Virus record (IMG/VR): IMGVR_UViG_3300044638_006750
Coordinates: 62,001-126,000 of that record
Direction: 5' to 3' (one strand)
DNA: 64,000 nucleotides
This document shows, piece after piece, positions 716 through 48,166 of this stretch. The notes beneath the pieces were generated by a model. That model worked only from the letters and a program-made list of their open reading frames with translations. It searched no databases and had not been told where the DNA came from. The translations under genes were made by a program, and so were the position numbers. Within the stretch, counting starts at the first letter, position 1, and every line of letters starts with the position of its first letter.

Positions 716-1045
716 ATGAAACATAATAAAAAAGATGAAGATTTAGATGATCTAATTTATAGTATCACTAAAAAATTTCAGACAACCATGATTGGAGCAT
801 TAGCTAAGTTTGAAGAATCTTTTGGATACTTATGGGATAACGATACCGAAAATGGTAAAGCATACTATAAGTTATGGCAACAAACACGAAACAATATACT
901 TAATAATGGAAATAATCAATTGAGATCGGCACTAGACGAATTGGAAGACTATGCCTATAATAAAGAAAAGGGCTATAAGTACCATTATAAATTCTATTTC
1001 AATAACAACAGACCAGAGGATAAAGGAGACCAATATGACAGGTAG
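716..1045 (+). CDS. Hypothetical protein (109 aa)
   Basis: ATG lies 2 nt after the previous stop. Helical, charged sequence. Overlaps the next gene by 11 nt. Confidence 0.8.
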   Translation: MKHNKKDEDLDDLIYSITKKFQTTMIGALAKFEESFGYLWDNDTENGKAYYKLWQQTRNNILNNGNNQLRSALDELEDYAYNKEKGYKYHYKFYFNNNRPEDKGDQYDR

Positions 1046-14000: not shown

Positions 14001-14874
14001 GGCTGGTAATGCGGCATTAGCATCCGGTTCTATGCAAGCATTAAATACTGAAAGACAAGTTTCTGCCGCTCAAGGAGCAATGGCTACTGGTTCTGTTATG
14101 ACCAAACCCTCTACTAGTACTGGTCAAAAGACACCACAATGGCAGCCCTCAAGTGGTCCAATGGGATTAAATAATGTACATCAAGAGGCGTATCTCAGAG
14201 GTATGACCACGCAAGAAGTAAATTATGAAAGACAACAACAATATTTGAGTAGCTTGAATCCCGAGACTAGAGATATAGAAAAAAGGAAACTTGGTAAAAG
14301 ATTATTAAAACCAAGCGAACGACAAGAAGCTGCCATACAAGCACAGAAAGATAGTGCAGCTGCCGCGGCGGCACAACAGCCAGGGGTAGTTCCAGCCCCT
14401 GTAGGAAGTGCTCCACAAATGCCACAAACTGTACCCGGTCAAAATACCAATGGTCAGATGGTGCCTCCAACCGCACCTGCTACTCAAGCCGGATATGTTA
14501 CTCCTCCATCAGAAGCTGGTTCTCCGGTTCCGGCTCCAAGACCAGCACAAAACGTACCCGGACAACAAAATCAAGGCGCTGGTGTATTACCCGGTATGGG
14601 CGGATTCGAAGCCTTTGCCAGCAAATTGGATACATTATTGACCAAATTAGGAGAGGTAAATATTCCTACGGAAATTAGACTTACAAGCGAAAGTATAGGA
14701 GTCAATGTCACATTAAATGGTGCGGAAGTTATGAATAAGATGCCAGAACAAATTAGAGGTCAAATAGTACAAGAAGTTGTAGCAAAACTTCGAGAATACG
14801 ACAAGGGAACATCTGGAGAAGGTGCAGCACTAAGTCCAAAAATTGGTGGACAATCTACGAATACAGACGTATAA
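2020..14874 (+). CDS. Giant tape measure protein (4284 aa) with internal enzyme-like cargo domains
   Basis: SD AGAGGA at about 2005. The N-terminal region (about 2500-3360) has TP901/PhageMin_Tail-type motifs (LAQAGLSA..., INTVAAKFAVEADDI, AETIATGLRTIFTRIQR, LGGFRQVGK). Lambda gpH-like YAQGG...PGE.V / FAAGG motifs, long Ala/Gln/Lys-rich helical regions and a glycine-zipper hydrophobic segment are present. Confidence 0.92.
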   Translation: MAGFNLTAQLNIVGPNNLKPVISNLRKQLSSAGGSITLNINPNISTSVNNLNKSLQSLDSTLKSINASASSVAASLRQIGSAAGTVNIKSVPKDIAAVTQQSQKLQQQQSQTAVATKASTDSMVEFGKQSALAIRRFAAFTLVTGIIYKVTSAFGNASAEFIKFNQQMVQLSQVTGSSLQNLAGLERTITSLSTSLGVSSSSLIDVSSTLAQAGLSAQETEEALSALAKTTLAPSFGNLNNTVEGSIALMRQFAISTGQLESALGSINTVAAKFAVEADDIITAIQRTGGVFAASSKGVAEGTEALNQFIAIFTSVRATTRESAETIATGLRTIFTRIQRRDTIELLKQYGIQLTDLEGKFVGPYEAVKRLSQGLAGLDTRDVRFSSIIEELGGFRQVGKVIPLLQQFTVAERALMVAQRGQGSLTSDAAKAQQALAIQMAKVQEEFVAMVRKIGSSNEFQTMVKMALNLASAFIQVADSAKYALPAITALLAVKGTIGAFRFASGFASGMRRGGGAAGLGERLSGAPRGYAQGGQIPVALEPGEMVFVGESARRAGYGNLRRLNRAGDRPNPRVALNRASGGGIFMVPGSGRGDTFKTNLPEGSFVIKRKSVRAVGADNIAQMAATGGQIRQNFARGSSGGLSAAPRLASAGKTVRAHVSTPTSMTEEMRQQILDYYTKSGKKIPKKFQPSLLGSSSAELIENLTIGLPYRYNEALKRGSNSVIPLRDFIKSFDRPDFLRSLGTSGRQKKQSLPQLSKTDEAELIRLLKKETIRNSTRLTKDIPGLAKGSRIISSDTQLQSLSGIIKEFYKKKQTALVRPVEMMSFYSHQGRTQHRDFLPTSLSEVLSQGLSKRYMGGLIQRLSGGSDKPLQGMGRSQLLTEARRLGVNYGNIVSWSELGKKGDIGAQARSRLIAKLEEARMLRKTSQAATSARAKRTNVAVIGAMAPPGVRGSSSEVIIPGARDRKTGKRTQDTPATLHIGALEGKTAARVTAVIRNQTARITQKVMKIIAQEAKMILPNDNMAKLKRKPMHSGIAGGLLEQAILGLMGIDKPMGSIDLGASGLSPELANVFGIPSASGVPTDITYGGEKGRTLEEAAKRKAVGKSRNAKGQRTSSQIGRGLAAIRASKAIGGIVQRLANGGITRSGKLSRSTFKLIPNEKGIGPSPFASGPVAQPLDYNALERSGLSMGLSRPMITKAIQDAKMLGISPEENIRKIASEAQSKRRPGFTHSTDSRSILSMLRKSGGPVNYEGPAMFFAKGGSVKPAVRNVGWIDSDFLRNSPKAKAEMDKLGMNVDEYKRFLTEESIKARKSGSVSRLTTVVGSPGSGKSSFAEGNQRTSVADNARLRKTHRFPIETPEDVAKANSIIDTAASVSPDRLVDLNQSDRIVALSSSTKEEQKILRRQLRHRTATGDKQYGRTHTITAQDSGETEAMLQMGLRDKKKLVTLGLLPNFKKRIKRQNELPLVREEQVSLGFGSFSPPTKAGHDQGLMSNAQYKKLVLVGPNEPVGADPHSARTALLPQDVRHRLATKAFPDAYVSKKTSGFAIPHVFDVGTDPETGRRLFIRRAKGSEALVAGKDEKSLKKYEEAGFGVREVPRDPNGESGTAARERILRGDFTGFHPEVEKDLRSKATQLSNRQEILPRIIEKTQERTTKQVSEIDKSLSSYPSRITEKIRQEQPDMVAAVESLRAKKTSIKSKAGSRPHTVLARLARRYPERYGLAQGGMPPKPQKQFGKIGLRSSGKEITAFYFKNNVREGFVTAHEIEKGIWNIGLSKATKGYGPRLYDAVMEAVTARGGVLTAHRGKVSGHAKKVWDVYANERSKPDNKYGSQVSKISLDSKHHTLSQDPNDSLNYGYQQQPNIIKGPDIVDMNDQKYDRFLQQMQFEFLRANGGGVQRSVRGNVRPIKKHSMIKPQLQNNELSTLQSQINDLESRRQALATHTKTGFFGGKSNPYQREIYDLEDEIARLSQRRYLLSQKSAPTPTVLAQPSVIARSKPQAVVPVARPKTIMPQQRQNVTASSRPGSVTIMLTKQQKLEMRQTIDRLNKQIEQANNTIATLKSHDRKPGFIGKLTGQSTRNPYQNEIWEAEAEQSRAQNEKRKLLELYGDQLNTYTGFAAGGHVMAMLTPGEAVIPPPETNRIGLSTLRRMNFADKNGMGRSKYAKGGNIGIVPGSGDSDSYGPVALPVGSFVIRKRATAALGLAKYSSGGDVKKFATGGSTTVSTSQTNSRMLDVRSAGGVDLGSVFGTSSIGKLLDIIKPQLDSFGNMIDRTTKSFGNLKPDVVQQLFYEYANELKSGVSSAEALRNAENKLASNLADSVVSKKGVNVSNSGVELTSPINTKNKDSVNVRSAGGIAIGNISTTKGPAVLDSAIQQLKPHLDKFGWMIDKTTAEFGTLDTKVVNQAYQKYITAIRNGTSQLEALEEATRTVKSSSTMEQMRRDDIKTSRRKSQSVLGSIMDPVGALNRYGRSRVSLGQEKLDNLTFSKQSQQVLSSGKGNLVGAATNQVLNNLTKGLGNASLAVSGFISAIGRGGGVGSAISLMKAGFARMAGNTTGLAAKFIGLQRTIVATEGKLKGMTKGQAQQALKEGKITKAEYKEAFGLRGKSRAVYHSAKDQPPAYNAKFEQETKTARAKAKKQALQDAGFGRQADTYIKDGKTYVKRDASGKAVNTQVGAKTQAIMEARDMATVNPASYGPQSSNAILATRRAGATAQDQMRAIVHGGGGGPPPKGPRGAKTAGAVKAPTNVPDQPGQRGGGGGGMGAYMAEMGLSMAGSAIADQYAKSLGGEKTLAGRQAANYGGSIVAGASTGMMMGSMIGSVVPGLGTVVGGAIGAGVGGLAGAGYAALNSKEVAAQFSSEQRQDKIGRHTTKLNEQLTTMNNRDVSVETRNRARAESRQTLIKMNELSSEEQKSGMENVGYLSYQARSTASERANSAQGVADANLSSIETEMQTTGKTLAQVRQSMDPAQWAAMTNTIADSDQAYQEQKEKLRGNSAELEKEKQKAVERQMAFLKVKEEAIQAARENARLNKAMQKVTVSFEKMADAMSNAAARANQVMKNGQIGIESIDNPLAANQVGQISKSADIISNPEAYSIKEVEDAARQYAGVAGSSSEQMVQAAVLPRKLEQSFGSAMVEARSSGKNDEETRSSVKSAVMNTVKAAFGENIGNDMQKKIDDFLNSKAASGELQNIDFNDLLKEIPGLADKMASSSKVMKALQDQAQSAANAIAMMGDAAQKTASKGQDIRNARADTFSTIANSTLAFRRGTGEKISWQADAGVRTQARAIRLGTTADVAASPQKMLGRYLALQQGADAASKRQQQVNEEQKGAMLAGGDQTQGAIDKMQQAANTTAEFAQATKQAREEILGLPNDIKDNINGILSELQDVMQERSAKIGAASGFMEKMLTSTPKDLRKMGNTFNNLNQTLSGKGVSFEESYSAKTAYDQVRNQGGTHMQAQRAAQEAYAQESSDTISMAKELAPLLGAVDPDAQNKMMASVYENMFAARGMDPSQMKVGDKSMKDYLDMMKKGAKEDPKVKALNDALAAQQAALVQANAAIEAIYTKDQADIQQKTGEVILNAMQQGAEAVKKAMEEAKVAGISPPGEAGAANSPQAQAQALNEEQTQQRKDQNLNDIEAAKKVINDPAASKEDKEKAEKVIAEKEQENAVLTGGLSGTRGLSSAENMTFKEHALPGETPEDFTKRRRKLMDMTGQSTPQQVSQNPTTPQQNAAGNAAATPSPTTTSSTPSSTSPAGSTSPAGQAAASQAATPQPPVRAITSQQREDEIVLQQGEMAQNEKIINDLSSSEEDKENARLEIQGSQHKIAMLQGKSKEEIAESVYGTKYEDMSPEQKEYLDLQHSAYSNNYSRQYGSLAPQTPAPTSQAASNQAAAPAPNTGTGPSSPPSFGQTMQAAMTAGQNNNVAYRSQDGLSGATRSVIANLPPQVQGMVTQAAQSNPALATAIQNGDLAAAQAALPPEAMAQIQQVMAGAGNAALASGSMQALNTERQVSAAQGAMATGSVMTKPSTSTGQKTPQWQPSSGPMGLNNVHQEAYLRGMTTQEVNYERQQQYLSSLNPETRDIEKRKLGKRLLKPSERQEAAIQAQKDSAAAAAAQQPGVVPAPVGSAPQMPQTVPGQNTNGQMVPPTAPATQAGYVTPPSEAGSPVPAPRPAQNVPGQQNQGAGVLPGMGGFEAFASKLDTLLTKLGEVNIPTEIRLTSESIGVNVTLNGAEVMNKMPEQIRGQIVQEVVAKLREYDKGTSGEGAALSPKIGGQSTNTDV
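5812..6400 (+). other. P-loop NTPase/kinase-like domain within the TMP
   Basis: Walker A in TTVVGSPGSGKSSF (GSPGSGKS at 5995-6018), a Walker B-like IIDT, and a LID-like RRQLRHR, as in the NMP-kinase/AAA_33 fold. Confidence 0.7.
6440..6920 (+). other. HIGH-superfamily nucleotidyltransferase (cytidylyltransferase/NMNAT-like) domain within the TMP
   Basis: GFGSFSPPTKAGH (6451-6489) matches the G-x-F-x-P-P/T-x-x-G-H signature. LVAGKD matches the VxGxD strand. ESGTAARERILRGDF (6838-6882) matches the S-[AG]-[ST]-x-x-R...GD motif. Confidence 0.72.
7210..7700 (+). other. GNAT-like acetyltransferase domain within the TMP
   Basis: Motif A-like ATKGYGPRLYDAVME (about 7360-7404), then GVLTAHRGKVSGHAKKVWDVY (motif B-like). 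Confidence 0.62.
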
Positions 14875-27882: not shown

Positions 27883-30800
27883 ATGGCGATATATGTTAAA
27901 GGATATAATCCCTGGAATAATCCACAGATATACGGCAGTTTTGGAGACACAAGTTGTGGACAATATCTAGGCGCTGGTGGTATCTATAATGTAACAGCCT
28001 CGTCTTTATTTTATCATAACACTTTTGCTCCAGAGTCTATTGATATTAGCACTGGGGTACAGTCATTTAGCTCTTGTTATACAAATCCGATGGCTGCTGG
28101 TTATAATAATTCTCCAGATTCATGTCCACCATATGTAGGGTCTTATGCCATAGTAGATAATAATGGGGACGTCTATCTACATGCTCCCAAGCATTATGTT
28201 TATGCTGGTCAGTTTGATGCTAATCCTTATCAAACTATGTTTAATAAGTTTGCTTCTTGGCCAAAGCTTGCAGATAAAAAATGGCAAAAAGTTATATTAA
28301 CTCCATTCTCTCTTCATGCCCTTACAACAACTGGACAGTTATGGACTATTATCAACAACAATGTCTATCAAAGTCTTTCTCAGAGTAGTCTAGAGGCATA
28401 TAGTGGTTTAGGTTTAGCATACAGAAGAAGAGTTCCAACTATTTTCGGTAGTATAGCTGGTGGTGATACTTTTATCAGTAGAACATATCCTATGTATGAT
28501 CGTCCATTATCATCGGTATTTAGTTATGCAAATACTATAGATATTTATAGCCCACAAAGAATCGCTTTGTTTGGACCGGAATATAGGAAGACAATTGGAG
28601 ATGGTAATCAAGGAACACTTACGACCATACTTAACGCTAAGGCTGGCATATCTTCATGTTCAAATGGACCTAGTTGGAGATTTAACGATGGTGGTAATTA
28701 TGCTAAAATTTTAGATATGTATAATTCAGTTTACATTTCTTCTCATAGTAGTGTTGCTAATGATGGTAGAACTAATTATACCTCTCCAGGAGATAATCAG
28801 CACAGATCATATACTGTTCCTAGTCCTTATTATACTGATTGGCCCAATATCAGGTCTGGTTCACCAACCTGTGTTCCTGCAAGTAGCGGCAATTGGTTAA
28901 CAAGAATTACTTTAGAAGGTTCTATAGCAGATAATTGGAAAGATATATATCATGTCCATGGATGTTTTTATGGGATCAATACTCTAAACCAAGTTTATGT
29001 TTGGGGTCCAAACGTCCCTACTCTCGGAGTAGTAGACTATCCTAGATTAACGACCTTGGGCGCAGACGGAGGATTAAGGAATATACAAGGAGGATCTACT
29101 GGCCCAGGCTACTCAGCATATACAGCATATGGCATAGACGGTAATGATGATCTAAAATTATGGACCGATATTTCATTAACGCCTGTAACTGTTTATGGTT
29201 CATTTAAAAAAGTTATAGCTGTAAATTCTCTTATGGGCTATAAAAGTGCAGCAAATGGTTTTTTCATAGCTTTAACCAAAACAAATGAAATAGTATTATT
29301 ATACAACATATCATATAATCCAGGTATTGCATTCGATAGTAATCTGAGACCAGCACATAGTTTATCTACCATACCACTAGCATCAACACGAGGAGCGACA
29401 TGGACAGATATTGCTCTAAGTGCTCCGTGGTTTGGATCCGGATCGGGTGTTAGTATAGACGCTATTAGGAGCGACGGTACGGTATTCAATATCTCTGGTA
29501 TTACTACGACATTTGCTGGTATAGTAACACAGCTATCTAATCAACTATCTGCAAATTCATATTTTGCAATGACATCTAACGATGAATTTAGTCAAACCTA
29601 TGCAAATTATTCTGGCTCAAGTATCTTTTCAAATTCTTTAAGTAATATTAATAATACTACTACGAAATATATTACATTCCCCAATGTAGTATATAGCGAT
29701 ACCAATTCATTGATTCCCACACCAACTCCAACCGTAACAAGTACAAGCACACCACCTCCAACACCAACAGCTACTCCAACTAGAACTCCTCCTCCAACCC
29801 AAACTACGACGAATACTTCTACAGTATCTGTTACTCCTACTCAAACACCAACCGGAACAACTACATCAACACCAACCAATACCACAACTCCAACTGTTAC
29901 GCCGACCACAACTCCTACTGCTACCAATACAAGAACACCAACCAATACTTCCACTCCGACTAATACTACAACTCCGACTAATACTCCCACAATCAGTCAA
30001 ACACCAACCAACACCCCCACCATTAGTTTGACACCAACTAATACCGTCACAAGCAGCACTACACCAACTAATACTGCTACTAATACACAAACCCCAACTA
30101 ATACTGTTACGTCTACTATCACTAGCACTCCGACACGTACACAATGTTATTTTACCGACGTTATAAAAAATCCCAGTTTTGAAAATAATGATACTAAAAT
30201 ATTAGATAATTGGGATTATTATAATGTTTATGTATTAGGTGGGCCACAATTAACTGCCGGCTACCTCGGTGGTCAAGGAGGAGTAGGACCAATAAACGAT
30301 GGTAAATATGCTGTTAGTTTAACAGGAAATGCAAATGGCTGGATAAGTCAGGCATTCTATACCAATGTTGGAGATGCGTATGCTATACGCTTCAAATATA
30401 CTGGAAATCCAGGCAACACTAACACACCCAATAATGTATTGAAAACATTAAGAGTCGGTATTGGAGAAAATGATAAATCTATAAATTGGTCTAATGTTAG
30501 TGATAGAGATAATATTAATCCAATATCTTCTACAATGCAAGTGACAGACTTCTCGTTCTCTGCTTCATCTTATCCTTCTCATAGCTTAACAAATTTACAA
30601 TGGGAAGACGGAATCATAACATACACAGCAACGTCCGAATTAACTAGAGTTGTTTTTCAGGATTTATCTACAAGTGTCGATGGTAATGATGGAATCATAA
30701 TAGATAACATCATATCATGTGGTGCTCAATATATAACAAAAACTCCAACGCCAACTTTTACGAATACTCCAACCAATACTCCCACTCAAACAGCAACAGC

Positions 30801-33174
30801 AACTAATACTCCCACCAACACCCCAACTCCTACTCAAACCCCTTCTTCTCCAGAAGATAAGTATTTGTACTTCTGGGGTAAAAATATAGTAAGCGATACT
30901 GCTGGAAAAACTTTTAGAGTTATTCCAGATAGTAGAACATATGTTCAAGTAGCAGACAACCCAAGAATAGATTCTAAATTAGCAACACAGTTATGGTCTA
31001 AAACCTTGGCATTATCCATAGGAGAAAATTTAACATTTAGTTTTGCTGCTAGTGAAAATGGGTCAGAACTATACGGCTGGGGCGGTGCTGATGATAGAGA
31101 AACAGATATCTTTACAGAATTTTATTATCCAGAACTAATTTACAGATTTAATAAGCAAAGAATTCTAGATATTAATTATGGTCAGACAAGTAGAAATATG
31201 TATGTATTATATGTTCTGACCAAGGTGACTGGCGATGATATTGTAAGCTTTCCTGGATTTGGTTTGATATTACCGGGTTATAACCATACCGTTAACCCTC
31301 CATCTAGTATTTATCCCAACATTATTAGAAGCGGGAGTGCAGTCTTACCATTACCAAATGGTGTTAGAGTTCAAGCTGTAAGAGGCACGAATATTCTGTA
31401 CTCAATACCAATTGGCAACAACAGTAGTTCATTGGGTAAATTAGCTAATATAGAAGATATGGTTAACGGCATAGGAACAGGGCTTTCTGACCCCAAGACT
31501 TCGATCAGAATACTTAATACTATTGTCTACTCTGGTGGTAAAATAGTAACAGGTGTAGGCACACTTGTAGAACTTAGTGGATATAATGCCGTAGAAACTT
31601 CATTCCCATCCCTAGACCTAACAAATATTAGTTCGGCTAAAGATATTGATGTGGTTACTAAATTTGATAGAACTACAGGCATTAAAACGGTTACCAGCAG
31701 AATTCCTCGTGCTCCAGATAATAATCTCCCTCCATTATCTTATAGTGAGGGTCCATACCATTCTATGATGATTAGTCAAACAGGTAAGCTATTCGCTAGA
31801 GGATCAAATGAAGGACGTTTTGGCAACAATGGTACTGGTGGAACAACATCTTTTGTGCAAATAGGTTCAGACAATAATTGGAAAAACGTAATCTGTGGCG
31901 TTAACCACACACTTGCCCTAAAACAAGACAACTCGCTATGGAGTTGGGGCTGGAATAACAATGGACAGTTGGGTTTAGGAGATAATTTAGACAGATACAT
32001 TCCTGTTCAGGTGCCGGGAGACTGGAGAAAAGTCAAGGTATTTGATGGTAATATTGGACAACATATTAACTATGGTATTCAAGGAGATGGTTCTATTTGG
32101 TATTGGGGATCCTATATAGGAAATGCTCCGGTTTTATTAGATAACTCTATAGAGTATGACGATTTTTCATTTAGTTGCAGATCATATGATCCTACGCCAA
32201 CACCAACTAATACCGCAACACCAACACTAACACCGAGTAATACGGCTACAAATACTCCTACAAATACTCCCACAATATCTAGTACTCCTAGTCAGACTCC
32301 GACAAATACCAGAACTCCCACAATCACTCCGAGCAACACACCTACTATCAGTATCACTCCAACTAATAGTCCTACAATAAGCCTGTCTCCAACAAATACC
32401 CCGACTATTAGCATTACGCCAACTAATACAAAGACTCCTACCAGAACTCCTACAACAACACCAACTAACACAGTAACACCTGGTTTAACAGCGACACCTA
32501 CCGCTACACCAACACAAACGCCAACAAACAGCGTAACTCCATCGAGAACTCCAAGTAACACTCCTACAAACACATTTACTCCAACCAACACAAGAACACC
32601 CACTAATACTCCAAGCTATTCTCCGACTAACACTGTGACTCCAAGTAATACTCCGACCAATACTATTACTCCTTCGAATACGGCTACTCCAACTCCAAGT
32701 CCCAGATATGTCAATGTATTAACAGCAAGTCAAACCAATAAATCGGCTATTATAGGTTTATCAGTGTCTCATACCTGGAGTCAAAGTTTTGTTAATAATA
32801 TTTTTGGTAGACTTTCTAGAATAGAAACTATGTTTGTTGGATTCTATGCTGGTACGGGCCAATTAGAGGTATATAGTGGACAACCAGGGAATAATTTAAC
32901 ACTATTACATAGTCAGAATGTTAGCATTTCTGCTAGCAATTCTTATGATTATACTATATGGGATATTACCTCTGGCGTTAATATTAATTTAATTCCTGGA
33001 AATACATATACTATTAAATTTATTCCTAATAATGACTTACCAGATCCATATGGTATGGTAATTAGTTTGAATAATCAATATATTGGAGGAACCTTCTGTG
33101 AAGATGAATTGTGTATTAAAACTGATAGAGATCTAGTCTTTAGGGCTTATGTTGGGGTGTTGGCCACATCCTAG
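27883..33174 (+). CDS. Large fibre/adhesin protein (1763 aa): RCC1-like repeats, PT linkers, intact DUF642/choice-of-anchor-C-like domain, C-terminal beta-sandwich
   Basis: RCC1 consensus [30 protein letters not shown] (about 31890-31980). DUF642-like KNPSFEN...[23 protein letters not shown]...IIDNI (about 30160-30720). Three long PT tracts. Confidence 0.8.
29715..30140 (+). repeat. Pro/Thr-rich linker in 27883..33174
   Basis: Direct translation. Confidence 0.9.
32190..32703 (+). repeat. Pro/Thr-rich linker in 27883..33174
   Basis: Direct translation. Confidence 0.9.
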
Positions 33175-33185
33175 GAGAATTATAG

Positions 33186-36100
33186 ATGCTTGAAATTGTA
33201 CAAGTTATAAATGGATCAATCAGTAATGGTGTTCTACCTCCACTAAATGGTAGCATTATTTCATCATATAATTATCATGGATGTGATAATGCCGTATTTG
33301 ATTATTTTTTAACTATTACTGCTTCTGATGGAGTTTCTAATAAAAGAGAAATATTTTTATTTACTATTAATCACAATACATCTAGATCAATAAACATTGG
33401 TGGAGTAATATACCCACCATATGGAGGAAGAATACCAGCACAACAAACTCTGACCGGTATTCCTGTCCCATTAAGCGGAGAAAGATATTTTATAAATGTA
33501 AAACCTAATAGATTAACGCCCAATCCTCATTGGGGTCCAATGAATCTATGTATTACTAATAGTCAATATAATTTAGGGTTTGCCACAGCGTCAAGATCAG
33601 CTTCTGGTAGATGCGCTGATCCATTGGGCGGAATAACACAGGTTTTTCCTACCCCATTACCTACAACAACGCCGACCCCAACTCCTACAAGGATTATTTC
33701 TCAATGCAAATATAATTTAATACTAAATCCAAGAATTAATAATTTATCTAATCCATTAGATACTGGTGTTGATATAGCAGCAGATTTGGTTAATCGAAGT
33801 ACACCTCTATCTATTACTTCCACAGGTACTATTAGTGTCAATCTGGCCGGAACCCCAGCAACAAATGCGGATGGATTTTCTGCAATAATATCTCCTCTTG
33901 GATTTCCGATACAGAGCCTATTAGGTAGAATAGGAACTTCAGGTAAAATTTTTAGAGTCGGATCATCTTACCTTAATTTTCCTACAGAGACCGGTAGACT
34001 TTATTTATTTATAGAAGATGGTATCCCGTCAGATAATAGTGGACAATTTATTATCTCTGTAAGCTATGGATTTACTCCATGTATCAGTCAAACCCCGACA
34101 TCATCGGCAACTCCGACACAGACGCCACCAACAACACCGTGTATATTCAATAATAGTATACTTAGTAATAATAGTTTTGAAAATGGTATAGTTGACTGGG
34201 ATAAATATGTGGTTTCTTTGGCTCCCAACAAAGGCAAAATAGCTTTATCTCTTGGGATGAATGGACCAAATGGATCTAAAAATTTTATAGACAGCAGCCC
34301 ACTAGCCAAAACTATTAAATTATATGGCGACCCGATAATTACAAACTTAAACTATAAAGTAGGTACATCAAGCGGTTACTTCAACCAATCTGCTATAATT
34401 CCAGACTCTATTTCGTGTAATAATTTTTTCTTAGATGCTACTAAAACAGGACTCTTTAATACTGGTGTTTATTTCGATGTTGGAGACGATATTTTCGTTT
34501 CGGTTGAAGGCTGCGGAACCTTTAATGGATCAACTCCTTTTAGTAATGATTATATCAATGGGATTATATTCGATTCACCGGTCTCAGCTATAGGTCCGGT
34601 GTCTGGTAGTTCGGTTCTATATTTTGGTCAAGAATATACAGGAAAAGCCACGTCATCTGGATATTTATTTTTGGGGATTAGAGACACAGATAATATATAC
34701 TCAAATAATACAGGAGGATATTGTGCCTGTGTTAAGAAAAACATAAACGACCCAGACTGTAACAGTATTACCAATAGTCCTAATAGGTTTATAGATCAAA
34801 CCAGATGTAAACAAAATATTCAAAACTGGATTTATTTAGATGATAATAAAGATTGGGATTTTATATGCAGTGGAGACTTTACTCTCGAAATGTGGATTAA
34901 TTTTGATGATGTTTCCAAACTTATAGGTATCTGTGGACAGTCAGATGGAAGATTATTACAAAATAAATGGGGATTATATTATAATGGATTATCATCAACA
35001 AGTGTCGTTAGTGCTGGACATATAGGTATATTAGTAGCAGATAAAACTTTCTCGTCGTCTATTAGCGTACCATGGAAACCTATAGTTGGAAGATGGTATA
35101 ATTTAGTTATTACTAGAGAAGATGATAATTGGAGATTTTTTATAGATGGTGTCCAAATTGGATCAACAATTGTTTCATCTGTTAGACCAGGAAGATCTGT
35201 TGGAGAATTAAGAATAGGTGCAGATGGTGAAAATTTTGCTAGATTCAGTGGGTTTATGAATAGCTTTAGAATAGTTAAAGGTTATGTGGTCTACAGAAAT
35301 AACTTCACCCCCTCCACTGTCCCACTAACCAATAATTTACCTATAACAGTAAGTAATTCTGATATTGATTCTGTTGTAGATGGTAATGAAAGTATACTTC
35401 TTAATGCTGGTGGATGGGTGTCTCAAAAATTCTTAGCTAGCCCAGGTCAGAGATATTTAGTTAAATTTAAATATAGTTCGGATACTGCTAATAAAAATAT
35501 TTTACTTCCAACGCCTACAGTCACACCCAGTATCACCCCATCAAGAAGAAATTTTGCTCCTTCTGACTTAAACGACCAACAAATTACTGTCGGTAGTGGA
35601 CCTGTTGATTTAGTTTCGGATCCATCGAATCGTAAATTATATGTAGCTAATTCATTAAGCAATACTATTAGTGTCATAGATCCTTATGGATACAAAATAC
35701 TTAATACTTTTCAAACATCTGCTAGTCCTGTTAGTTTGAGCATCAATAAGAAAACAAATAAATTATATATAGCTAATAGTACGAGTAATTTAATTACTAT
35801 TATTGATACTAATACAGACGCGTTCATCAAAACTATCAATATTAATGATGGTCCGAAGCATATAACCGTAGATGATATTTTGAATAAAGTATATGTATGT
35901 ACAAACACGTCTGTAGTAGTTTTAGACGGATACACTGATCAAGTGCTGTATATAGTAGATTGTAGAAGCTATGGAGGTATCCCCACTAAGACTGTTCTGG
36001 ATATCTCGCTCAACAGGGTGTTTGTGTTATTAGATTATCAATCTTATAATACTAATATTACATCTTTTATCTATTTCGATGGTAATGCCAACACCAACCC

Positions 36101-39100
36101 TTCAGTTTCTACGATAGCAGGAGAACCTCTTAAAGACTTCTATATTGATTCAACAGTTAACTCACTACATGCCACATATAAATTCACTGGCAGAAGCACA
36201 GACTACCAGCTTTTCAGACTAAACACAATAACCCTCGACAGATCTTTGTCTGCTGAATTTTTTCTATCTGGTGGAACCACCAAGCTAGTTGTTAGCGGAT
36301 TAGATTTACTATATGATCAGTCTAATGGCAAAACATATCTATACAATAAGTCCACAAATAGTTTGTATGCCACATACTCCGCATATATCACTGGATCAAT
36401 TAATAAAGTTTTTGTCGCTTTGGCATTATCATATGCTGGATCATTTATCAGGCTTAATGAGGTTTATACTGACTCTAGAATCATATTTATTAATAGCAGT
36501 AATTCAAGAATCTTTTTGATCAATGTTCCAAACCAATTACCTCTATCAGTATCTCTAGATACTGTCGCAACTGGTAATAGACCCATAGATGGAGATATTA
36601 ATCCAACCACGCTAAAAGCATATATAACTAATTTTAACAGCGAAGACATTACTGTACTTAATGGTTTAACCAATAATCCTCTATCCACTATAAGTAGACA
36701 AACTATTGTAGTAGGCAAGAATCCGAGAGCCTCAGCGATAAATAAAAATACTAATAAGATTTATGTTGCTTTAATTACTACTAGTCAAATTGCTGTTATA
36801 GATGGAGATACCGACACAGTAGAACAATATATTTCAGTATCTAAATTCCCACAATATATAACAGTAGATCATGCTTTAAACAGAATTTATGTCTCCACCG
36901 CTTCTACAATCGACATCATTGACTGCACAAATAATAGTGTTATAGCTTCTGTGGCTCATGGCATCAAAAGCGGACAGTTAGGCAAAGGGATTGTAGATTC
37001 TAGTGCTCAAAGAGTATTCTTTATTGTAGATTATAGTTCTTTAGTAAATCCAACCACAAATAGCTTTAGGGTTGATGCAGACTCCACAGACATTTCTTTT
37101 GTTTATTTTAACACAAACTTCACTACCGCACCAGATTTACAATCTATTAATTATGGACCAATAAGTGATTTCTTTATTGATGAATTCTTTAATAATTTAT
37201 ATGGTATTCCTTTTAATCCAACAACTACATCTTTTGTAAGAATAAATACTATTACGTTAGCTAATAGTGTGTCTCCTGATCTATTAAATAATAGCGGCGT
37301 ACCAATAACTATAGGACGATCATCTATATATTTCAATAGTGTATCGGGCAGAGTTTTGGTATATAATATTGATACAACAACAATTTATAGTTTTTATGTG
37401 TTAAGCTTAAATGGCGTTGCTGACTTTAAGGTTTCTACATATTTGAGCAATGTTATCAACATTAAATCTTTATTTATCAATACTGCATTTGATGATAATA
37501 GAGTTTATTTATTAAATAGTGATTATGATAGGATCAATATAGCCGATCCATCCACAGTACTTAATGTTACGTTTACGCCCACTCCGACTAGGGCTACGGC
37601 GACTCCTACCGCAACTCCAACAATTACTCCTCCAAATAATACCAAAGATTTGTTGGTCGGATTAGGCGCAGATAATAATTCAGTGTTGTGGGCTAATCCT
37701 ACATCTTCTTTTGATCCAATGGCTGGTCTATCAACCACAAACTTTAGCTATAATCCAGATTCATACACAGGTCATTCTCTTAATAATGTAGTTTGGGCAG
37801 AGGGGACCGTCTTGTTTAGTCCCACAGTTCCTACAAATAGAATAGTATTTAAGAGTAATTCGGGCAATATCTTGCTTGATTCAATTACAGTTTGTGGACA
37901 GTTGAATATAACAAAAACTCCTACTCCAACAAATACGGTCACTCCTAGTATTACTCCAACAAAAACCCCAACTAGTAGTGTTACACCTAGTATTACCCCT
38001 ACTATTTATTCTGATCCAGCCTTAAATATTAAACACTATCTTGGAGTAAGTAGAAAAAAGAATTTATATAGTTGGGGATTGAATAATAATGGTGAGCTAG
38101 GCCAAGGCGACACAATATCTCGTATTGCTCCAACATTATTTAGAGTGCCGGGTTGGAAAAAAGTTATTAGCAATCCATATTTCTTAACTGCCGATCCTGG
38201 AAAAAATATCGGTAATTTATGGTATGGTATTAAAAATAACTTTACTCTATGGGAATGGAGAGAAAACTCTCCCTCTAGTTTGGATGGTGAGCTACTTTTT
38301 GTTACCCCTAATGTATTTACATTTGTATATAAAAATGCTAGTTCTATATACTATATACATAGTAATTCTCGTAAATTATATAGCTATGACTTAGTAAACT
38401 ACAAGAGGAGCGATAATCCAATTATAGAGGAAAAAGTTTATGATGTAGTTAGTATAGCTCAAAATTTCTTTGCTATTTTATATGAAGGCGAAACCGATTT
38501 GCTTATCAGAATCAATGGAGAAGATAGTTTCTTAAAGTTTAATAAAGACGAATTTTTACAACTATCTGCTAATAGCAATGGTACATTATTTGCTATTAGA
38601 AATGACCAAAAACTATATGCTTTAGGGAATAACGCTAATGGGCAGATAGGAAATAATAGTAAACAATATGTTCAATTTTTAACTCAAATCGGAAATATCT
38701 CTTGGAAATACATAAGTAGTGGTTCTAGACATACTCTTGGCATTACAGTAGACGGTCTCCTATACGGATGGGGGGATAATTTTTACGGACAATTGGGAGA
38801 CGGTACTGCTAGAGAAAGACTGGTGCCTACCGCATCTTCTAATGTTTCTGTCGATTGGACAGAGGTTTTTGCCGGTAATCAATACTCTCTAGGGAAGAAA
38901 GAAGACAATACTCTATACGGCTGGGGTTTGAATAATGAATTTATGTTGGGATTATTCCCGCCGACCACAAACAATTTTTCTGTACCGACCCCTCTTCTTG
39001 GAGTATGGACAGATATTACTTTGTCTAATAATAGCATATTTGCCCTTGGCGAACCACCACCAACACCAACACCATCTGTTACTACCACTGTTACTCCGTC

Positions 39101-42164: not shown

Positions 42165-44885
42165 ATGATAAATAATAATCTTCAAATTTACAGTTGGACA
42201 TATGGGTACTATATCGACAATATCACTAACAAAAAAATATCCATTGGTGATATCGTTAGATATAGAACTCTTAGTCAGGGAAAGATATTATTCAATAACA
42301 ATATAGATATTGTATCTAGACCTAGGGGCGGTGGTCAACCTACTGGTGATGCTGTACAAGATTATAATGGTATATTTAGCGATAATGATTTATTAAATAA
42401 GTCTAGACAATATATTAGCATACCATTTTCAAATCCTGTTCATATTTTATCAATAGAATTTAATGCAGATATTTTTACAGACATAGACGGAGTATCTCAA
42501 GGTTCGTTAAGTAAATTGTCTTCAGAGGATGCTTCGTACATATCTCTAATTTTTTCAGACAATACAACAAAAGATATTGCTATTGATCTTTGTGAATATA
42601 ATAGTGTCAATACTTTAAAATTTACAGCACCAGAAACACTTTATTATATTAAGGAAATCAGATTTTACGGACCTAAACCAAGAAAACATCAGGCTTTCGG
42701 CTCTACTATACAACCACTAATAGACGTTCCTGCTGATTATACAAGCAATCAAAGTGGTATTAATAGATTGTGGGGTTATCAACCAGATAAGTATTCTTTA
42801 AATCAAACCTCTTTTGTTTTAACTGATCCATCTCTTAATGGTAGAAATAATCTGATTTTTAAAGAAAACATAGCAACCGCATTTCAAACATACGCTCGTA
42901 ATAGAAAATCAACCCTGGATATAAATAAAGACGCTTTGCTTAATATTGCGTCGTCTACTCCATTGTTTATATCTGATTCTGTTCGTACATATGGGTCGTT
43001 ATACGGATATATCGAACTTATTTCACAAGACGTTGTTGATACTACGAATCTATTTTTAAAAAATATAACATTTAATTCACCATCATATTTTTATATCAAT
43101 AGTGAAAATCTAATACCTCCAAAAGACCCTCTGCTAGTTACCGGAGGTCTTTATCTATCGAGTACTGATAACAAAAATTTGAAGCAGAGAGTGGTGCATC
43201 TTTTTGCTCGTAGGTGGGATTCTTATGCCTCATCTATAGAAGACAACTGGATAAATGATGCTATTATACTTATCAAAAATCCTCAACATAGTGAAGTTGT
43301 CTCTACATATTTTAATCTAGACGACTTTGAATTTTTGGACGTATATGAAGCATCGGCTGTTAGTTTAAAGCATCTTAATATAGCAGTAGAAACCGAAGAA
43401 CCAACTCCTACACCAACAGCCACAATCACTAATACTCCAACTCCAACAAATACTCCAACACCAACAACATCTCCATCAGCATCCGCAGAACCTGTTAAAG
43501 CAGGATATGTCTATATTTGGGGAACCAATGGATATAAAGATGATATAATTGTTAATCCTCAAAAAATAGATCAAGATAATAATTTTATGGGTGTTGATCT
43601 ATCATTTACTAATATTTTTACTGGTATTAATCATGCAATAGCAGCAAGACAAGATAGGGTTTTATTCCCGATTAAAGACAACAGAAATTCTCAGTTAGGT
43701 CTACCATTTTCCGACAATATAACACAACTCAATAAACTAAATACGGTTATCAGTACAATTAATAGTCGCTGGAGAAACATATCTCTAGGGGATGACTTCA
43801 CATATCTGCTCAATATCGACTATGAAGTATACAGATGGGGAAATAATAAATACTATCAATTAGACTCAGATTTCGATAAGCTGCCATTACCGACTCAATT
43901 ATTAGTCGATGGCAAGGTTCGCTTTTTAGATATAGCCTGTGGTAAAACTCATGCATTTGTTATTCGAGATGATGGTTCTTTGTATGTTTGCGGAACTGTT
44001 GATGGTAATGTCATCAATCATTTTACTAGGTATACAAATGAAGTGGGCTGGGAGAAGATATTTACTAATGAGACTCATACATTTGGTATTAAACAAAATG
44101 ACACATCTCTATATGTATTAAGAGGTAGACTTAAGGATAACAGAATATCTATAAACTCCCAACCAGAATCTATAGATCCAGACATAGCACAATATAGAAG
44201 CATAGCTGTTGGAGATAGTCATATTTTAGTTGTTAAAAAAGATGGCACATTATGGGTTTTTGGAGATAATAATTACGGTCAACTAGGTACAGGGAATTAT
44301 GATCCTATATTTGACAAATTAACTTCCAGAGATAGTTATCAAAGTTGGTCCAAAGTTGCTGCTGGTAGTAGACATTCTTTGGCAATAAATAGTATTGGGG
44401 TATTATATGGTTGGGGATCTGGAGAAGATTACCAGTTCGGATTTGTACAAACTAATTTTGATAAACCAACATTAATTTGGGGAGGCAATTGGATAGACAT
44501 ATCGGCTAAGGGTAATATGAGCGGTGCTGTTGCTGGAGACTATATTTTCCAGGAACTTACTACTCAAACACCTACCCCAACGCCGACAAACACCGCAACT
44601 CCATCATTAACTCCTAGTGTTAGTGATACTCCTCCACCAACCCCTCCGCCTCCGTCACAATCAGCTACTGTTACTAAAACCCCTACAAATACACCAACGC
44701 CAACTGTTACTACTTCACCGACACCAACACCAACACCCACACAACCCATATTTTTATTTAAGATTATAGATGTATTACCAGTTACTCCACCACCAACTCA
44801 ATCGGCTTCTCCTCCGCCACCGTCTCCGGAACCAACACCTCCGGTCGAAGTATATGATTTTACAAATATAACATTTCCAGTATAG
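42165..44885 (+). CDS. RCC1-repeat structural protein with PT linkers (906 aa)
   Basis: IAVGDSHILVVKKDGTLWVFGDNNYGQLG and VAAGSRHSLAINSIGVLYGWG match the RCC1_2 consensus. Confidence 0.82.
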   Translation: MINNNLQIYSWTYGYYIDNITNKKISIGDIVRYRTLSQGKILFNNNIDIVSRPRGGGQPTGDAVQDYNGIFSDNDLLNKSRQYISIPFSNPVHILSIEFNADIFTDIDGVSQGSLSKLSSEDASYISLIFSDNTTKDIAIDLCEYNSVNTLKFTAPETLYYIKEIRFYGPKPRKHQAFGSTIQPLIDVPADYTSNQSGINRLWGYQPDKYSLNQTSFVLTDPSLNGRNNLIFKENIATAFQTYARNRKSTLDINKDALLNIASSTPLFISDSVRTYGSLYGYIELISQDVVDTTNLFLKNITFNSPSYFYINSENLIPPKDPLLVTGGLYLSSTDNKNLKQRVVHLFARRWDSYASSIEDNWINDAIILIKNPQHSEVVSTYFNLDDFEFLDVYEASAVSLKHLNIAVETEEPTPTPTATITNTPTPTNTPTPTTSPSASAEPVKAGYVYIWGTNGYKDDIIVNPQKIDQDNNFMGVDLSFTNIFTGINHAIAARQDRVLFPIKDNRNSQLGLPFSDNITQLNKLNTVISTINSRWRNISLGDDFTYLLNIDYEVYRWGNNKYYQLDSDFDKLPLPTQLLVDGKVRFLDIACGKTHAFVIRDDGSLYVCGTVDGNVINHFTRYTNEVGWEKIFTNETHTFGIKQNDTSLYVLRGRLKDNRISINSQPESIDPDIAQYRSIAVGDSHILVVKKDGTLWVFGDNNYGQLGTGNYDPIFDKLTSRDSYQSWSKVAAGSRHSLAINSIGVLYGWGSGEDYQFGFVQTNFDKPTLIWGGNWIDISAKGNMSGAVAGDYIFQELTTQTPTPTPTNTATPSLTPSVSDTPPPTPPPPSQSATVTKTPTNTPTPTVTTSPTPTPTPTQPIFLFKIIDVLPVTPPPTQSASPPPPSPEPTPPVEVYDFTNITFPV

Positions 44886-44896
44886 GATAATTAACT

Positions 44897-47800
44897 ATGG
44901 CACTAGTAGACGCAGTAGCAGACAACAGTTTAGTTTATATTATTTCTAATTCTAGACAGAACTTGCATGTACTGAATACTAGAAATCAGATAGACGATAT
45001 CAATCTTGACGGTTTGGCTGAAACAGTAACCATATCAGGAAAACCATATGCGGCTAAAAGAATATACAGTGTGATAGTATATGCTGGAGAAGTTTTGGCT
45101 GGCGGCGACTTTGGTTTAAAAAGATGGAATGTTGGCAGTAGAAAATGGGAAAGATATGCTACATTTACTGGAGGTATAAGTAGTTTAGTAGATAAGGGAT
45201 TATTTCCTAATAGCGTTCTTAGCATGAAGACATACAACGGTAAGTTATATATTTTTGGTAATTTTGTAGATAGTCTTATAGGTAGCACCCCGTCTGCGGT
45301 TACATCCAGATATATTGTGGTATACAACGGATCATTTTTTGAACCTGTCAATGGGGCGAATACACTTCCGATCATAAATCTTTCTGCGTATGGTCTTTTA
45401 AGCAAATCTAGTGTGAATCCTGCTTTAAATGACAATATTTTTTCTTTGTATATTTACAATAATAATATCTACATCTTAGATAAGGGTATTTTTAACGGAA
45501 AGTCCACCCTGCAAGATGTGGTTAAGGCAGATGCTTTAACAGATGTGGCTAATGATGGTACTACTTTGGTTTATTGTTTATTAGATGGTGCTACCACCTT
45601 CTCTACAAGAAAAATTAATGGTCAAATTCTCAATGATTATCAAATAGATAGTACTCTTTATATTACATCGGCGGTTAAAAAATCAGGATCTCAATATCAG
45701 CAAAATTTATTTTCTTCTATTGATTTAAATACATCAGATATAACTAGAGGATATGAAGTATTTTTAGGTACAACGTATGCTTCTGTTACTGGGGATATTT
45801 TTACAAATTATAATGTAGAAGGTAATTCGACAACATCTGCGATCAGCAATAAAGCAACAAGATTCTTAAAACAAAACAATGTTAAATTTAGAAAAATTCA
45901 TAATGGTATTTCTATACAAAATGGAACATATGAACAAACCAAAGCTGCCATTCTTATAGATACTAATAACAATCTATGGGCTCTGAAATCTCAATGGGTA
46001 GAGACGAATTCGAGTGCGGCATACTATGTACCTCTGTCTCAAGAAATTTCGTATCAAGCTTTTGTTCAATATAATTTAGATTATGGTCCACTAACTTTAA
46101 ACGGTAGAATTGTTGATGCTGTAATGGGATTAGATACCGTTGCAGTTTTAACAACTTCTGGAGAAATTTATATTTGGGGTAAAAATAGTTATGGTCAATT
46201 AGGTCCAGATATTCCTTTGGGCTCTATTATAGACTCTCCAGTCAAAGTTGCTGGAAATGGATATAAGAAATTATATGTGTGCGACAATACATATTATGCT
46301 ATCAAAGATGATAATACATTATACGCCTGGGGCCAAAGCACTACTGACTTAGGCGGTCAGTTAATTCCAGGAGTTGTCGGTAATGCTTTATTGCCTACTC
46401 AGATTGAAATAGCTATAGGGACTAATGATACTCCGATTAATAGAACTGGTAGTAGTGTTGTATCCGACCAGATGGGCTCATTCTGGAAAAGTATTAGTTT
46501 ATCTCCTGTTGGAATCTATGGAATAGATATCACTGGACTACTATATTATTGGGGTGGCCCAGAGGGAACATCTGCTTATCCTATTACTAGAACGGTATCG
46601 GGCAACTCAGAAAAACACACAGGCTTGTTCGATATAGAAAATATCAAACCTATTCCAGCTCCATCTGCTCCCGGTAATCCAGTATTGTTGGGTTGTCCAG
46701 CTTTTGTTAATGATGAAACTCCAATCATCGGAGATCCTGGTCAATATATTGATATTAGTCATGATAGTTGTTGGTATAATCATAATTATGTATTCAATTT
46801 CTCTATTCAGTCTAATACTACTGGTGTTCCTAGTACAGTATTCAGCTTGACTCAAAAATCTATTAATGCTGATTTAATTCATGTTAGTAGTTTTGTAACA
46901 TATACATACGTATTAAATGATAAAACTTATACAACATATTGGCACAAAAATTTGCTTAATGATGAAACTGGAGATAATTCTGTAGGCAAGATCAACACAT
47001 CTGCGTGGGTAAAAACAGCCAATGTATCCAGTTATATTATAAGTTTGCCTATTCCGCAGGCAAAAACCCTAGCAACCGGAAATATATATGAATTAAATTT
47101 AAATACTAATAATCATAAACAATTATTAATCAAGTTTCGTTTCAATAACAAACCATATTGGACTATCAATAGTCTCAGTGGAATAAGCACATTAGGATCA
47201 GTAAATACATTATCGGGTTTAGGACTAACTAATATTAGATTGTGTGCTATAGACGCTGCGTCTGCTCTGAGAATAGACACGGGCAGTCCTGTTAGATATG
47301 ACTATTTGACTAGAAATAAAAAATGGGATAGTACAAATGAATACTATGCTATAGATGATGATGGCGAATTGTATGGACTGCCATATTCTGGTTATCCTGG
47401 GGTATCAAATAAATATCCTTTTGTATTACCATATAAATATTATATCACTAAAGATAATAGTTTTACTGGGTCTACGTCTTTGTTTGATATTAATAATTCT
47501 TATATTTCTGACATACTAATAGATAATAATAGGCTTATTATTGCTGGATCTATTCCAAATGGTAACAGTTTTTATTCATATAAAAGTTTGGCTATTTATG
47601 ATTTAGAACAAAGTTCAGTAGTTAATTTAACCATAGATACTACATCTGCTATTAATACTGTTATCAATAAAATATTACCGCAGTCTGATTGGGTTCAACC
47701 ACCACCTCCTCCAACGCCCACTCCGACCCCTACTCAAACGCCAACAACTAGTTTAACACCATCTAATACTCCTACTATTAGTTTAAGTCCCACTAATACA

Positions 47801-48166
47801 GCAAGTCCCACTAATACTAGGACGCCGACTCCTACTATTAGTGAAACGCCGACATTAACTCCTACAATAAGTCAAACCCCAACAACAACCACTACTACAA
47901 CTCCAACAGGAACCCCACAACCTACTCCAACAAGAACTCCTACTAGAACGGTTTCTGCTACTCCTACTAATACTAGAACGCCTACCCCGACACCTACACA
48001 TACTCAGACTCAAACTCCGAGTAACAGTCCTACTCCAAGAAATTCTTGGGATATTGACGGACAGCAAATTGTCTTTACGGATGCAGAAAGAAATTCTGTG
48101 GATCTTAGTTGCAAGTGTATAGCAGAAGAGACCCTTGCCAGAGAGGGTAGGTCTGATGGTGTATAA
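44897..48166 (+). CDS. Beta-propeller/RCC1-repeat structural protein with a C-terminal PT linker (1089 aa)
   Basis: N-terminal propeller blades (VYAGEVLAGGDF, YNGKLYIFGNF) and RCC1-like VAVLTTSGEIYIWGKNSYGQLG. PT tract at about 47698-48040. Confidence 0.78.
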   Translation: MALVDAVADNSLVYIISNSRQNLHVLNTRNQIDDINLDGLAETVTISGKPYAAKRIYSVIVYAGEVLAGGDFGLKRWNVGSRKWERYATFTGGISSLVDKGLFPNSVLSMKTYNGKLYIFGNFVDSLIGSTPSAVTSRYIVVYNGSFFEPVNGANTLPIINLSAYGLLSKSSVNPALNDNIFSLYIYNNNIYILDKGIFNGKSTLQDVVKADALTDVANDGTTLVYCLLDGATTFSTRKINGQILNDYQIDSTLYITSAVKKSGSQYQQNLFSSIDLNTSDITRGYEVFLGTTYASVTGDIFTNYNVEGNSTTSAISNKATRFLKQNNVKFRKIHNGISIQNGTYEQTKAAILIDTNNNLWALKSQWVETNSSAAYYVPLSQEISYQAFVQYNLDYGPLTLNGRIVDAVMGLDTVAVLTTSGEIYIWGKNSYGQLGPDIPLGSIIDSPVKVAGNGYKKLYVCDNTYYAIKDDNTLYAWGQSTTDLGGQLIPGVVGNALLPTQIEIAIGTNDTPINRTGSSVVSDQMGSFWKSISLSPVGIYGIDITGLLYYWGGPEGTSAYPITRTVSGNSEKHTGLFDIENIKPIPAPSAPGNPVLLGCPAFVNDETPIIGDPGQYIDISHDSCWYNHNYVFNFSIQSNTTGVPSTVFSLTQKSINADLIHVSSFVTYTYVLNDKTYTTYWHKNLLNDETGDNSVGKINTSAWVKTANVSSYIISLPIPQAKTLATGNIYELNLNTNNHKQLLIKFRFNNKPYWTINSLSGISTLGSVNTLSGLGLTNIRLCAIDAASALRIDTGSPVRYDYLTRNKKWDSTNEYYAIDDDGELYGLPYSGYPGVSNKYPFVLPYKYYITKDNSFTGSTSLFDINNSYISDILIDNNRLIIAGSIPNGNSFYSYKSLAIYDLEQSSVVNLTIDTTSAINTVINKILPQSDWVQPPPPPTPTPTPTQTPTTSLTPSNTPTISLSPTNTASPTNTRTPTPTISETPTLTPTISQTPTTTTTTTPTGTPQPTPTRTPTRTVSATPTNTRTPTPTPTHTQTQTPSNSPTPRNSWDIDGQQIVFTDAERNSVDLSCKCIAEETLAREGRSDGV
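47698..48040 (+). repeat. Pro/Thr-rich linker in 44897..48166
   Basis: Direct translation. Confidence 0.9.
48158..48166 (+). promoter_or_regulatory. Candidate late-promoter motif GGTGTATAA
   Basis: Variant of GTGTAT(T)AA overlapping the stop codon, 31 nt upstream of ATG 48197. Confidence 0.25.

Follow-up and report, generated by a model that had tools for sequence, protein, structure and literature searches.

Evidence for a discontinuous DUF642-type domain carrying nested domain insertions in a jumbo-phage protein that is probably a tail fibre or adhesin

Do the domains of a very long phage tail protein follow one another along the chain, or can one small domain be interrupted by others much larger than itself? 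The question is raised by a 2219-amino-acid (aa) protein encoded on the uncultivated, metagenome-derived phage contig IMGVR_UViG_3300044638_006750 (232,683 bp), of which we analysed a stretch of 64,000 nucleotides (positions 62,001 to 126,000 of the record, referred to here as the window). A preliminary description made from the letters of the window alone had proposed that a DUF642-like domain, intact in the adjacent upstream gene, is divided in this protein into three colinear pieces (a, b and c), that a LamG domain between a and b is itself divided by a further lectin-like domain, and that a Pro/Thr linker, two YVTN propellers and a second Pro/Thr linker lie between b and c. Its coordinates proved right to within a few residues, and the refined boundaries are collected in Table 1 (residues of the protein are numbered as (nt − 33186)/3 + 1). 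With a probability of roughly 0.8, we consider that residues 319–1573 (1255 aa) form one discontinuous DUF642-type (galactose-binding-like) jelly roll with large autonomous inserts in two of its inter-strand loops. The predicted three-level nesting (a DUF642-type host, a LamG domain within it and a small beta-rich module within the LamG domain), with a propeller pair in the other host loop, is supported by sequence profiles, alignments to intact homologs, AlphaFold2 confidence values and Foldseek superposition.

The host domain can be compared with its uninterrupted paralog in gene 27883–33174, the only other copy in the window, which scores 29.1 bits against Pfam DUF642 (PF04862) when excised and 20.7 bits within the full protein (threshold 27). 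BLASTP of the paralog domain against the 2219-aa protein aligned template residues 52–93 with residues 732–771 (E = 9e-7) and template residues 100–193 with residues 1487–1571 (E = 3e-12). Only 37 relatives of the template domain came out of an exhaustive search that covered 1.84 billion representative proteins. From the template's relatives, with the target and its orthologs excluded, a custom profile hidden Markov model (HMM) was made; the alignment used for structure prediction took its outside rows from these proteins too, 20 of the 21 rows matching Pfam DUF642 (best E = 1.9e-21). On the target the custom profile gave three matches in colinear order, hmm 4–31 on residues 323–346 (−3.1 bits, a weak match), hmm 40–93 on residues 720–771 (28.1 bits) and hmm 89–195 on residues 1478–1573 (41.7 bits). 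The preliminary description had suggested that the pieces be joined and scored together, and when this was done with the custom profile of DUF642 members a+b+c scored as one full-length domain over hmm 4–194 with 90.9 bits, compared with 87.3 bits for b+c, 46.5 bits for c alone and 34.1 bits for b alone. The Pfam DUF642 model matches piece b alone at 18 bits (E = 0.0027, profile positions 56–94; threshold 27) and gives no match on piece c alone; because it is discontinuous, the split host domain goes unreported in a Pfam scan. When residues 718–1578 were aligned with 21 intact homolog domains by MAFFT, one clean gap of about 720 columns appeared in the homologs, between ‘...KFKYSSD’ and ‘KDLLVGLG...’.

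Piece a is the weakest of the three. Its increment to the joined score is only 3.6 bits, which was equalled by 7 of 200 shuffles and by 8 of 200 random windows. Other observations nevertheless speak for it. The first 45 residues of the template find their best local alignment in the whole protein at residues 319–360, with a score reached by 32 of 1000 shuffles when the whole protein was searched and by 5 of 5000 at the expected site. Piece a carries the N-x-SFE motif that is common to 12 of the 13 aligned domains, and its first residue is Cys319 (codon 34140–34142; the corresponding codon of the paralog is 30148–30150). At the other end of the split domain Cys1570 (codon 37893–37895) lies in the final ‘(V/S/I)CG’, 1251 residues away along the chain. 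A Cys pair at both domain ends is found in all seven phage-type copies (the three split ones included), and both residues are missing from the six other DUF642 domains aligned; it should be noted that these sequences are related, so that the covariation is a pattern rather than a statistical test. It would agree with a clasp that links both ends of a single domain, and C319–C1570, as judged from sequence, is a candidate disulfide pair.

The first insert, in the loop between pieces a and b, is a split LamG domain. Laminin_G_3 (PF13385) matches residues 560–697 with 48.2 bits in the full protein and 55.1 bits when excised (cutoff 27.6), and because this match spans positions 15–141 of the 151 in the profile, the C-terminal part looks almost complete by Pfam boundaries. 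The structural LamG domain extends N-terminally of the Pfam match by further strands. With residues 344–404 and 545–716 as separate phmmer queries against LamG-rich proteins, about 30 of the 38 repeat matches from unrelated proteins had the N-piece match immediately preceding the C-piece match, with a projected N-to-C gap of −21 to +4 residues (mostly −4), compared with gaps of 140 residues in the target and of 136 and 146 residues in two of its orthologs (P0002 and P0003, respectively). In a second MAFFT alignment (A2) with 31 intact LamG repeats from seven unrelated proteins, all uninterrupted, these repeats show one clean gap opposite residues 402–546 of the target, between ‘...GYFNQ’ and ‘NWIYLDD...’. 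Comparison with intact homologs, which the preliminary description had also proposed, gave a single clean gap for the host and for the LamG domain alike.

The 144-aa module lies between the ‘YF(D/N)G’ strand and the next strand of the LamG domain, that is, in the inter-strand loop between predicted strands 396–399 and 548–551. In an AlphaFold2 model of residues 318–775 the predicted local distance difference test (pLDDT) values were 84–96 for the N-terminal LamG strands, 78–97 for the C-terminal part, 42–74 for the module and below 50 for piece a. Foldseek searches of BFVD with this model found intact phage LamG proteins (232–249 aa) superposing over 387–402 columns with template modelling (TM) scores of 0.74–0.79 (target-length normalised) and E-values down to 1e-16. 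Because intact LamG domains superpose across both halves, the model unites the two halves in a single LamG domain, from which the insert loops out. Structure prediction, advised in the preliminary description as a way of seeing whether the split domains still fold, supported it for both LamG halves and left the innermost module at low confidence. Tail and baseplate proteins of phages often contain LamG domains (Foldseek against BFVD), and against the PDB the best matches included ConA-like jelly rolls at E of about 1e-7, the CBM40 of sialidases among them. Foldseek matches to the N-terminal receptor-binding subdomain of clostridial neurotoxins were also obtained; a relationship to the toxins was rejected, these matches reflecting the shared ConA-like fold only.

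The innermost insert had been called LecA/PA-IL-like, and this label could not be upheld. PF07828 gave no match at E ≤ 10 in any of six sequences (the insert, its two orthologous copies and three N-terminal look-alike domains), Pfam as a whole gave no match to the insert at the same limit, and a PDB sequence search with the insert was also without a match. A search of 5.8 billion proteins returned no standalone homolog of the insert and likewise none of the N-terminal look-alike domain. In the ESM atlas all ten of the family-bearing best matches of the insert are PA-IL (score 0.93), this recognition falling below the reliability mark of the tool. PA-IL-like identity is a lead from the ESM atlas, one without HMM support, and it stays a lead because the insert fails the PF07828 match, the one available membership test. 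The insert was modelled with eight strands, at pLDDT 42–74 only, and ends in a Cys-rich tail of 31 aa with conserved cysteines, which is 80% identical among orthologs versus 58% for the core. The look-alike domain nearer the N-terminus (residues 173–300) aligned with the insert in hhalign over 87 columns (E = 0.0015, probability 17%, a weak match), and this domain may be a second copy of the fold of the innermost insert, which we take as a hint rather than a finding.

The second insert spans residues 772–1484 in the loop between pieces b and c. As had been proposed, it consists of two propellers between Pro/Thr linkers: propellers 1 and 2 are 29% identical over 329 aa (E = 2e-34), in an AlphaFold2 model of residues 718–1578 each has pLDDT 70–96 (about 25 and 27 strands) with the linkers at 26–44, and Foldseek matched the tandem propellers of LRP6, Utp21 and Aip1 at E of 1e-18 to 1e-17. 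Pfam matches on the propellers are borderline (YNCE at 20.6 bits versus a threshold of 27.1; Lactonase at 22.0 or 20.9 bits, depending on the excision, versus 21.7). The insertion site again falls in an inter-strand loop, between predicted strands 757–765 and 1487–1495, so that both mapped sites are placed between consecutive predicted beta-strands, in line with the idea of insertion into loops. In this model piece b has pLDDT 83–86 and piece c 66–91. In the model of residues 318–775, which is without c, piece b has only 37–58, and because the alignment there also lacked the DUF642 homolog rows the rise is not purely due to the presence of c. At the DNA level no direct repeats were found at the borders of the propeller insert, and the Pro/Thr linkers share no identity beyond 14–16 nt with the rest of the window. 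A recent insertion, or recombination from linker to linker, was considered and set aside, as no trace of it was found in the DNA; the recombination idea is speculative.

All of the pieces occur in order in three further orthologs from other samples, P0002 (2222 aa), P0003 (2226 aa) and L003 (2370 aa), with 65–77% identity, and the three-piece HMM pattern recurs in each of them. Segment by segment (mean pairwise identity among the four orthologs, Table 1), conservation within the module is comparatively high in host pieces a and b; their 77–79% exceeds the values of the neighbouring LamG, insert and propeller segments, which argues against the view that the three DUF642-like pieces are relics that no longer co-fold and serve as mere spacers between independent domains. 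We regard that view as improbable, since the pieces are fully colinear and cover the whole profile (hmm 4–194), the terminal Cys pair is kept, and b and c together reach pLDDT 83–91. It draws on the facts that piece a is only weakly detectable, that the three pieces were modelled in two overlapping spans and that the model running from b through the propellers to c has a low overall predicted TM score (pTM, 0.44), a value that is expected because the Pro/Thr linkers are floppy. A shade less probable again is assembly in trans, in which pieces a, b and c of different chains would complement one another by domain swapping and so lock an oligomeric fibre. Phage fibres are commonly trimeric, and the long Pro/Thr linkers would permit such an exchange; the intact paralog and all of the outside DUF642 domains are, however, ordinary single-chain domains, b and c are already confident in a monomer model, and neither a coiled coil nor a trimerisation motif was noticed beside the module. 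That the layout is an artefact of a chimeric contig or of fused ORFs can practically be dismissed, for although the contig is metagenomic the same uninterrupted ORF and the same piece order are found on four independent contigs from different samples at 65–77% identity, and the ORF has neither stops nor frameshifts.

Several points weigh against the discontinuous jelly roll with its nested inserts. Piece a is statistically weak when taken alone (+3.6 bits, p of about 0.03–0.04), and the innermost insert, for which model confidence is low, could be assigned to no family. The rise in the pLDDT of piece b may partly reflect the deeper alignment of the second model. Pieces a and c are present in separate models only, and contact between the pieces is read from pLDDT alone. 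Neither experiment nor annotation marks the protein as a fibre or as a sugar binder, and there was no match between it and the PHROG tail-fibre families; because the word ‘fibre’ draws on gene position, with no such match behind it, we use it as a provisional label.

If residues 319–1573 are indeed one jelly roll, the arrangement would work as follows. Loop 1 (a|b) would hold the LamG/ConA-like domain, one hairpin of which would in turn hold the 144-aa beta-rich, Cys-containing module, and loop 2 (b|c) would hold the tandem propellers, tethered on both sides by flexible Pro/Thr linkers. In the folded protein the three host pieces would meet and probably be clasped by C319 and C1570, such that the binding-type domains would branch off one small hub and would not be arranged as beads on a string. 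Carbohydrate binding is typical of DUF642, LamG/ConA-like and PA-IL-like folds. By analogy with such folds the module may bind glycans on the host surface during adsorption; the branched multi-lectin head of the preliminary description is putative in the same way.

The genome context gives some indication of how this layout came about. The upstream gene with the intact domain is also present in L002 and L003, indicating that the pair of intact and split copies predates the divergence of these phages, and we infer that the layout arose stepwise, by insertion into a duplicate of the intact domain of the neighbouring gene. The ortholog in L003 (metagenome contig Ga0164293_10000011; ORF L003:8813-15925) has an extra block of 160 aa (L003:11330-11809), cleanly inserted in a loop where two YVTN repeats of propeller 1 meet, following the position that corresponds to residue 846. 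Pfam gave no match on this block; in the ESM atlas its first match (0.98) is to a phage protein cluster, and SPRY is the only Pfam family among the neighbouring clusters. From this extra block, loop insertion seems to be ongoing in this fibre family. Because L003 has this further SPRY-like block in propeller 1, one might go on to propose, quite tentatively and with the odds at present against it, that the family is a natural ‘insertion scaffold’ in which the loops of small jelly rolls and of propellers take up entire binding domains time after time, each of them a potential next host. Were this true, host recognition would be changed or widened by branching from one hub and not by swapping the terminal tip. 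The Pro/Thr linkers on either side of the propellers hint at linker-flanked cassettes as the mobile unit. Two side observations concern the host domain. The split domain and its intact paralog share, at their C-terminal boundaries, an exact identity of 16 nt (37906–37921 and 30731–30746, respectively), which was the longest match of the linker regions in the window. The outside protein P0122 (2839 aa) has one intact DUF642-type domain (residues 1250–1413) and, in addition, two partial matches about 170 aa apart (1895–2005, hmm 62–178; 2177–2233, hmm 135–194), which may be another interrupted copy.

Table 1. Features of the split module, of the protein that carries it and of related loci (window coordinates; identity is the mean pairwise value among the four orthologs).
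Feature	Position (nt)	Strand	Residues	Mean identity	Basis or remark
Carrier ORF of nested module, 2219 aa	33186..39845	+			Intact, open frame; probable tail fibre or adhesin
N-terminal 165 aa				0.51	
N-terminal beta-rich domain	33702..34085	+	173-300		No Pfam match; nearest ESM-atlas clusters same as those of innermost insert
Host domain, piece a	34140..34223	+	319-346	0.77	Cys319, N-x-SFE first-strand motif, weak HMM match
LamG/ConA-like N-terminal strands	34224..34391	+	347-402	0.66	phmmer, MAFFT alignment A2, pLDDT 84-96
Innermost insert, 144 aa	34392..34823	+	403-546	0.58 (core)	Alignment gap versus 31 intact LamGs; about 113-aa beta-rich core
LamG C-terminal part	34824..35333	+	547-716	0.71	PF13385 Laminin_G_3, pLDDT 78-97, Foldseek
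Host domain, piece b	35343..35498	+	720-771	0.79	HMM 28.1 bits, BLASTP, Pfam DUF642 18 bits
Pro/Thr linker into propellers	35499..35561	+	772-792		Translation; pLDDT 31-39; 98% identity among orthologs
Beta-propeller 1, YVTN-type repeats	35568..36560	+	795-1125	0.65	Pfam borderline, model, Foldseek
Beta-propeller 2	36564..37565	+	1127-1460	0.61	Tandem duplicate of propeller 1; pLDDT 71-96
Pro/Thr linker back to host domain	37569..37637	+	1462-1484		Translation; pLDDT 31-44
Host domain, piece c	37638..37904	+	1485-1573	0.67	HMM 41.7 bits, BLASTP; Cys1570 near end
RCC1 propeller (C-terminal)				0.82	
C-terminal domain (last 94 aa)				0.81	
Intact paralog domain, uninterrupted, in adjacent gene 27883-33174	30145..30735	+	755-951 of that gene product		Pfam DUF642
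Tape-measure candidate, 4284-aa ORF	2020-14874	+			PF10145 minor-tail/tape-measure domain, residues 188-393

From the position of its gene, the 2219-aa protein of this jumbo phage is probably a tail fibre or adhesin. All of the large ORFs of the window are on the + strand, and 3′ of the 4284-aa tape-measure candidate there follow numerous large proteins that contain RCC1-type propellers as well as Pro/Thr linkers, the target ORF being part of this tail module. The candidate itself is exceptionally long for a tape-measure protein, and a tail of great length would be expected from it. The neighbours 27883–33174, 42165–44885 and 44897–48166 likewise combine RCC1-type propellers with long Pro/Thr linkers. 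The family phrog_15511 matches regions of four proteins that include the Pro/Thr linkers, which is probably a low-complexity effect. When the gene was compared by megablast with 50,697 phage records, no match was obtained. Along the protein, conservation runs in the reverse direction to the usual fibre pattern, with the N-terminal 165 aa lowest and the C-terminal parts highest, and the C-terminus may be the virion-proximal end.

With regard to known systems, a literature search for ‘Russian doll’ insertions found nothing under that name. Domain insertions as such occur in 20% of multidomain proteins according to a catalogue based on ECOD and AlphaFold, which documents nested A1-B1-C-B2-A2 architectures of up to six levels, in cyanobacterial RNA polymerase, and reports that inserts are consistently smaller than their hosts (Protein Sci 2026, PMC13114784). 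The present protein resembles those nested insertions in that an autonomous domain breaks into a host and is broken into in its turn; it differs from them in that the host is of about 170 aa and its inserts of about 370 and 710 aa (two to four times the host), in being a phage tail protein and in having one insert tethered by Pro/Thr linkers. A second comparison is with evolved distal tail proteins (evoDits), whose modules sit in a loop of the galectin-like domain of Dit. Those of siphophages that attack Gram-positive bacteria have carbohydrate-binding modules within a structural protein and a role in adsorption (PMC9863714). The likeness, a phage tail protein with inserted modules, is an analogy only, Dit homology not having been found (no Dit family is among the Pfam and PHROG matches of the 2219-aa protein), and the present case is unlike evoDit in having a DUF642-type host in a 2219-aa fibre-like protein, a deeper nesting and propellers among its inserts.

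At the level of the individual domains, the closest relatives of the host are members of Pfam DUF642 (PF04862) and its paralog passes the threshold of that family; the copy described here is, in contrast to the family, discontinuous, and the phage-type subfamily adds the terminal Cys pair. The LamG domain has the same fold and belongs to the same family as those of phage tail and baseplate proteins in BFVD (for example, the LamG protein of Ralstonia phage RSL2 and the baseplate wedge initiators of cyanophages), and unlike the 31 LamG repeats of seven unrelated proteins it is interrupted by a 144-aa module. A domain of about 170 aa that tolerates more than 1000 aa of inserts in two loops, with an intact paralog next to it and an ortholog with one insert more, makes a set that should be useful for benchmarking how domain parsers and structure predictors deal with discontinuous domains. 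The set has value for annotation as well, since standard Pfam scans miss the host domain entirely, and it is relevant to the question of how the adhesion proteins of phages acquire further binding modules. The protein exemplifies, in a real and conserved form, a mode of protein construction that is already known, and it involves no new mechanism; what is unusual, when it is set beside the systems above, is the size of the inserts relative to the host, the presence of a DUF642-type host in a jumbo-phage protein and the fact that this host is missed by standard scans.

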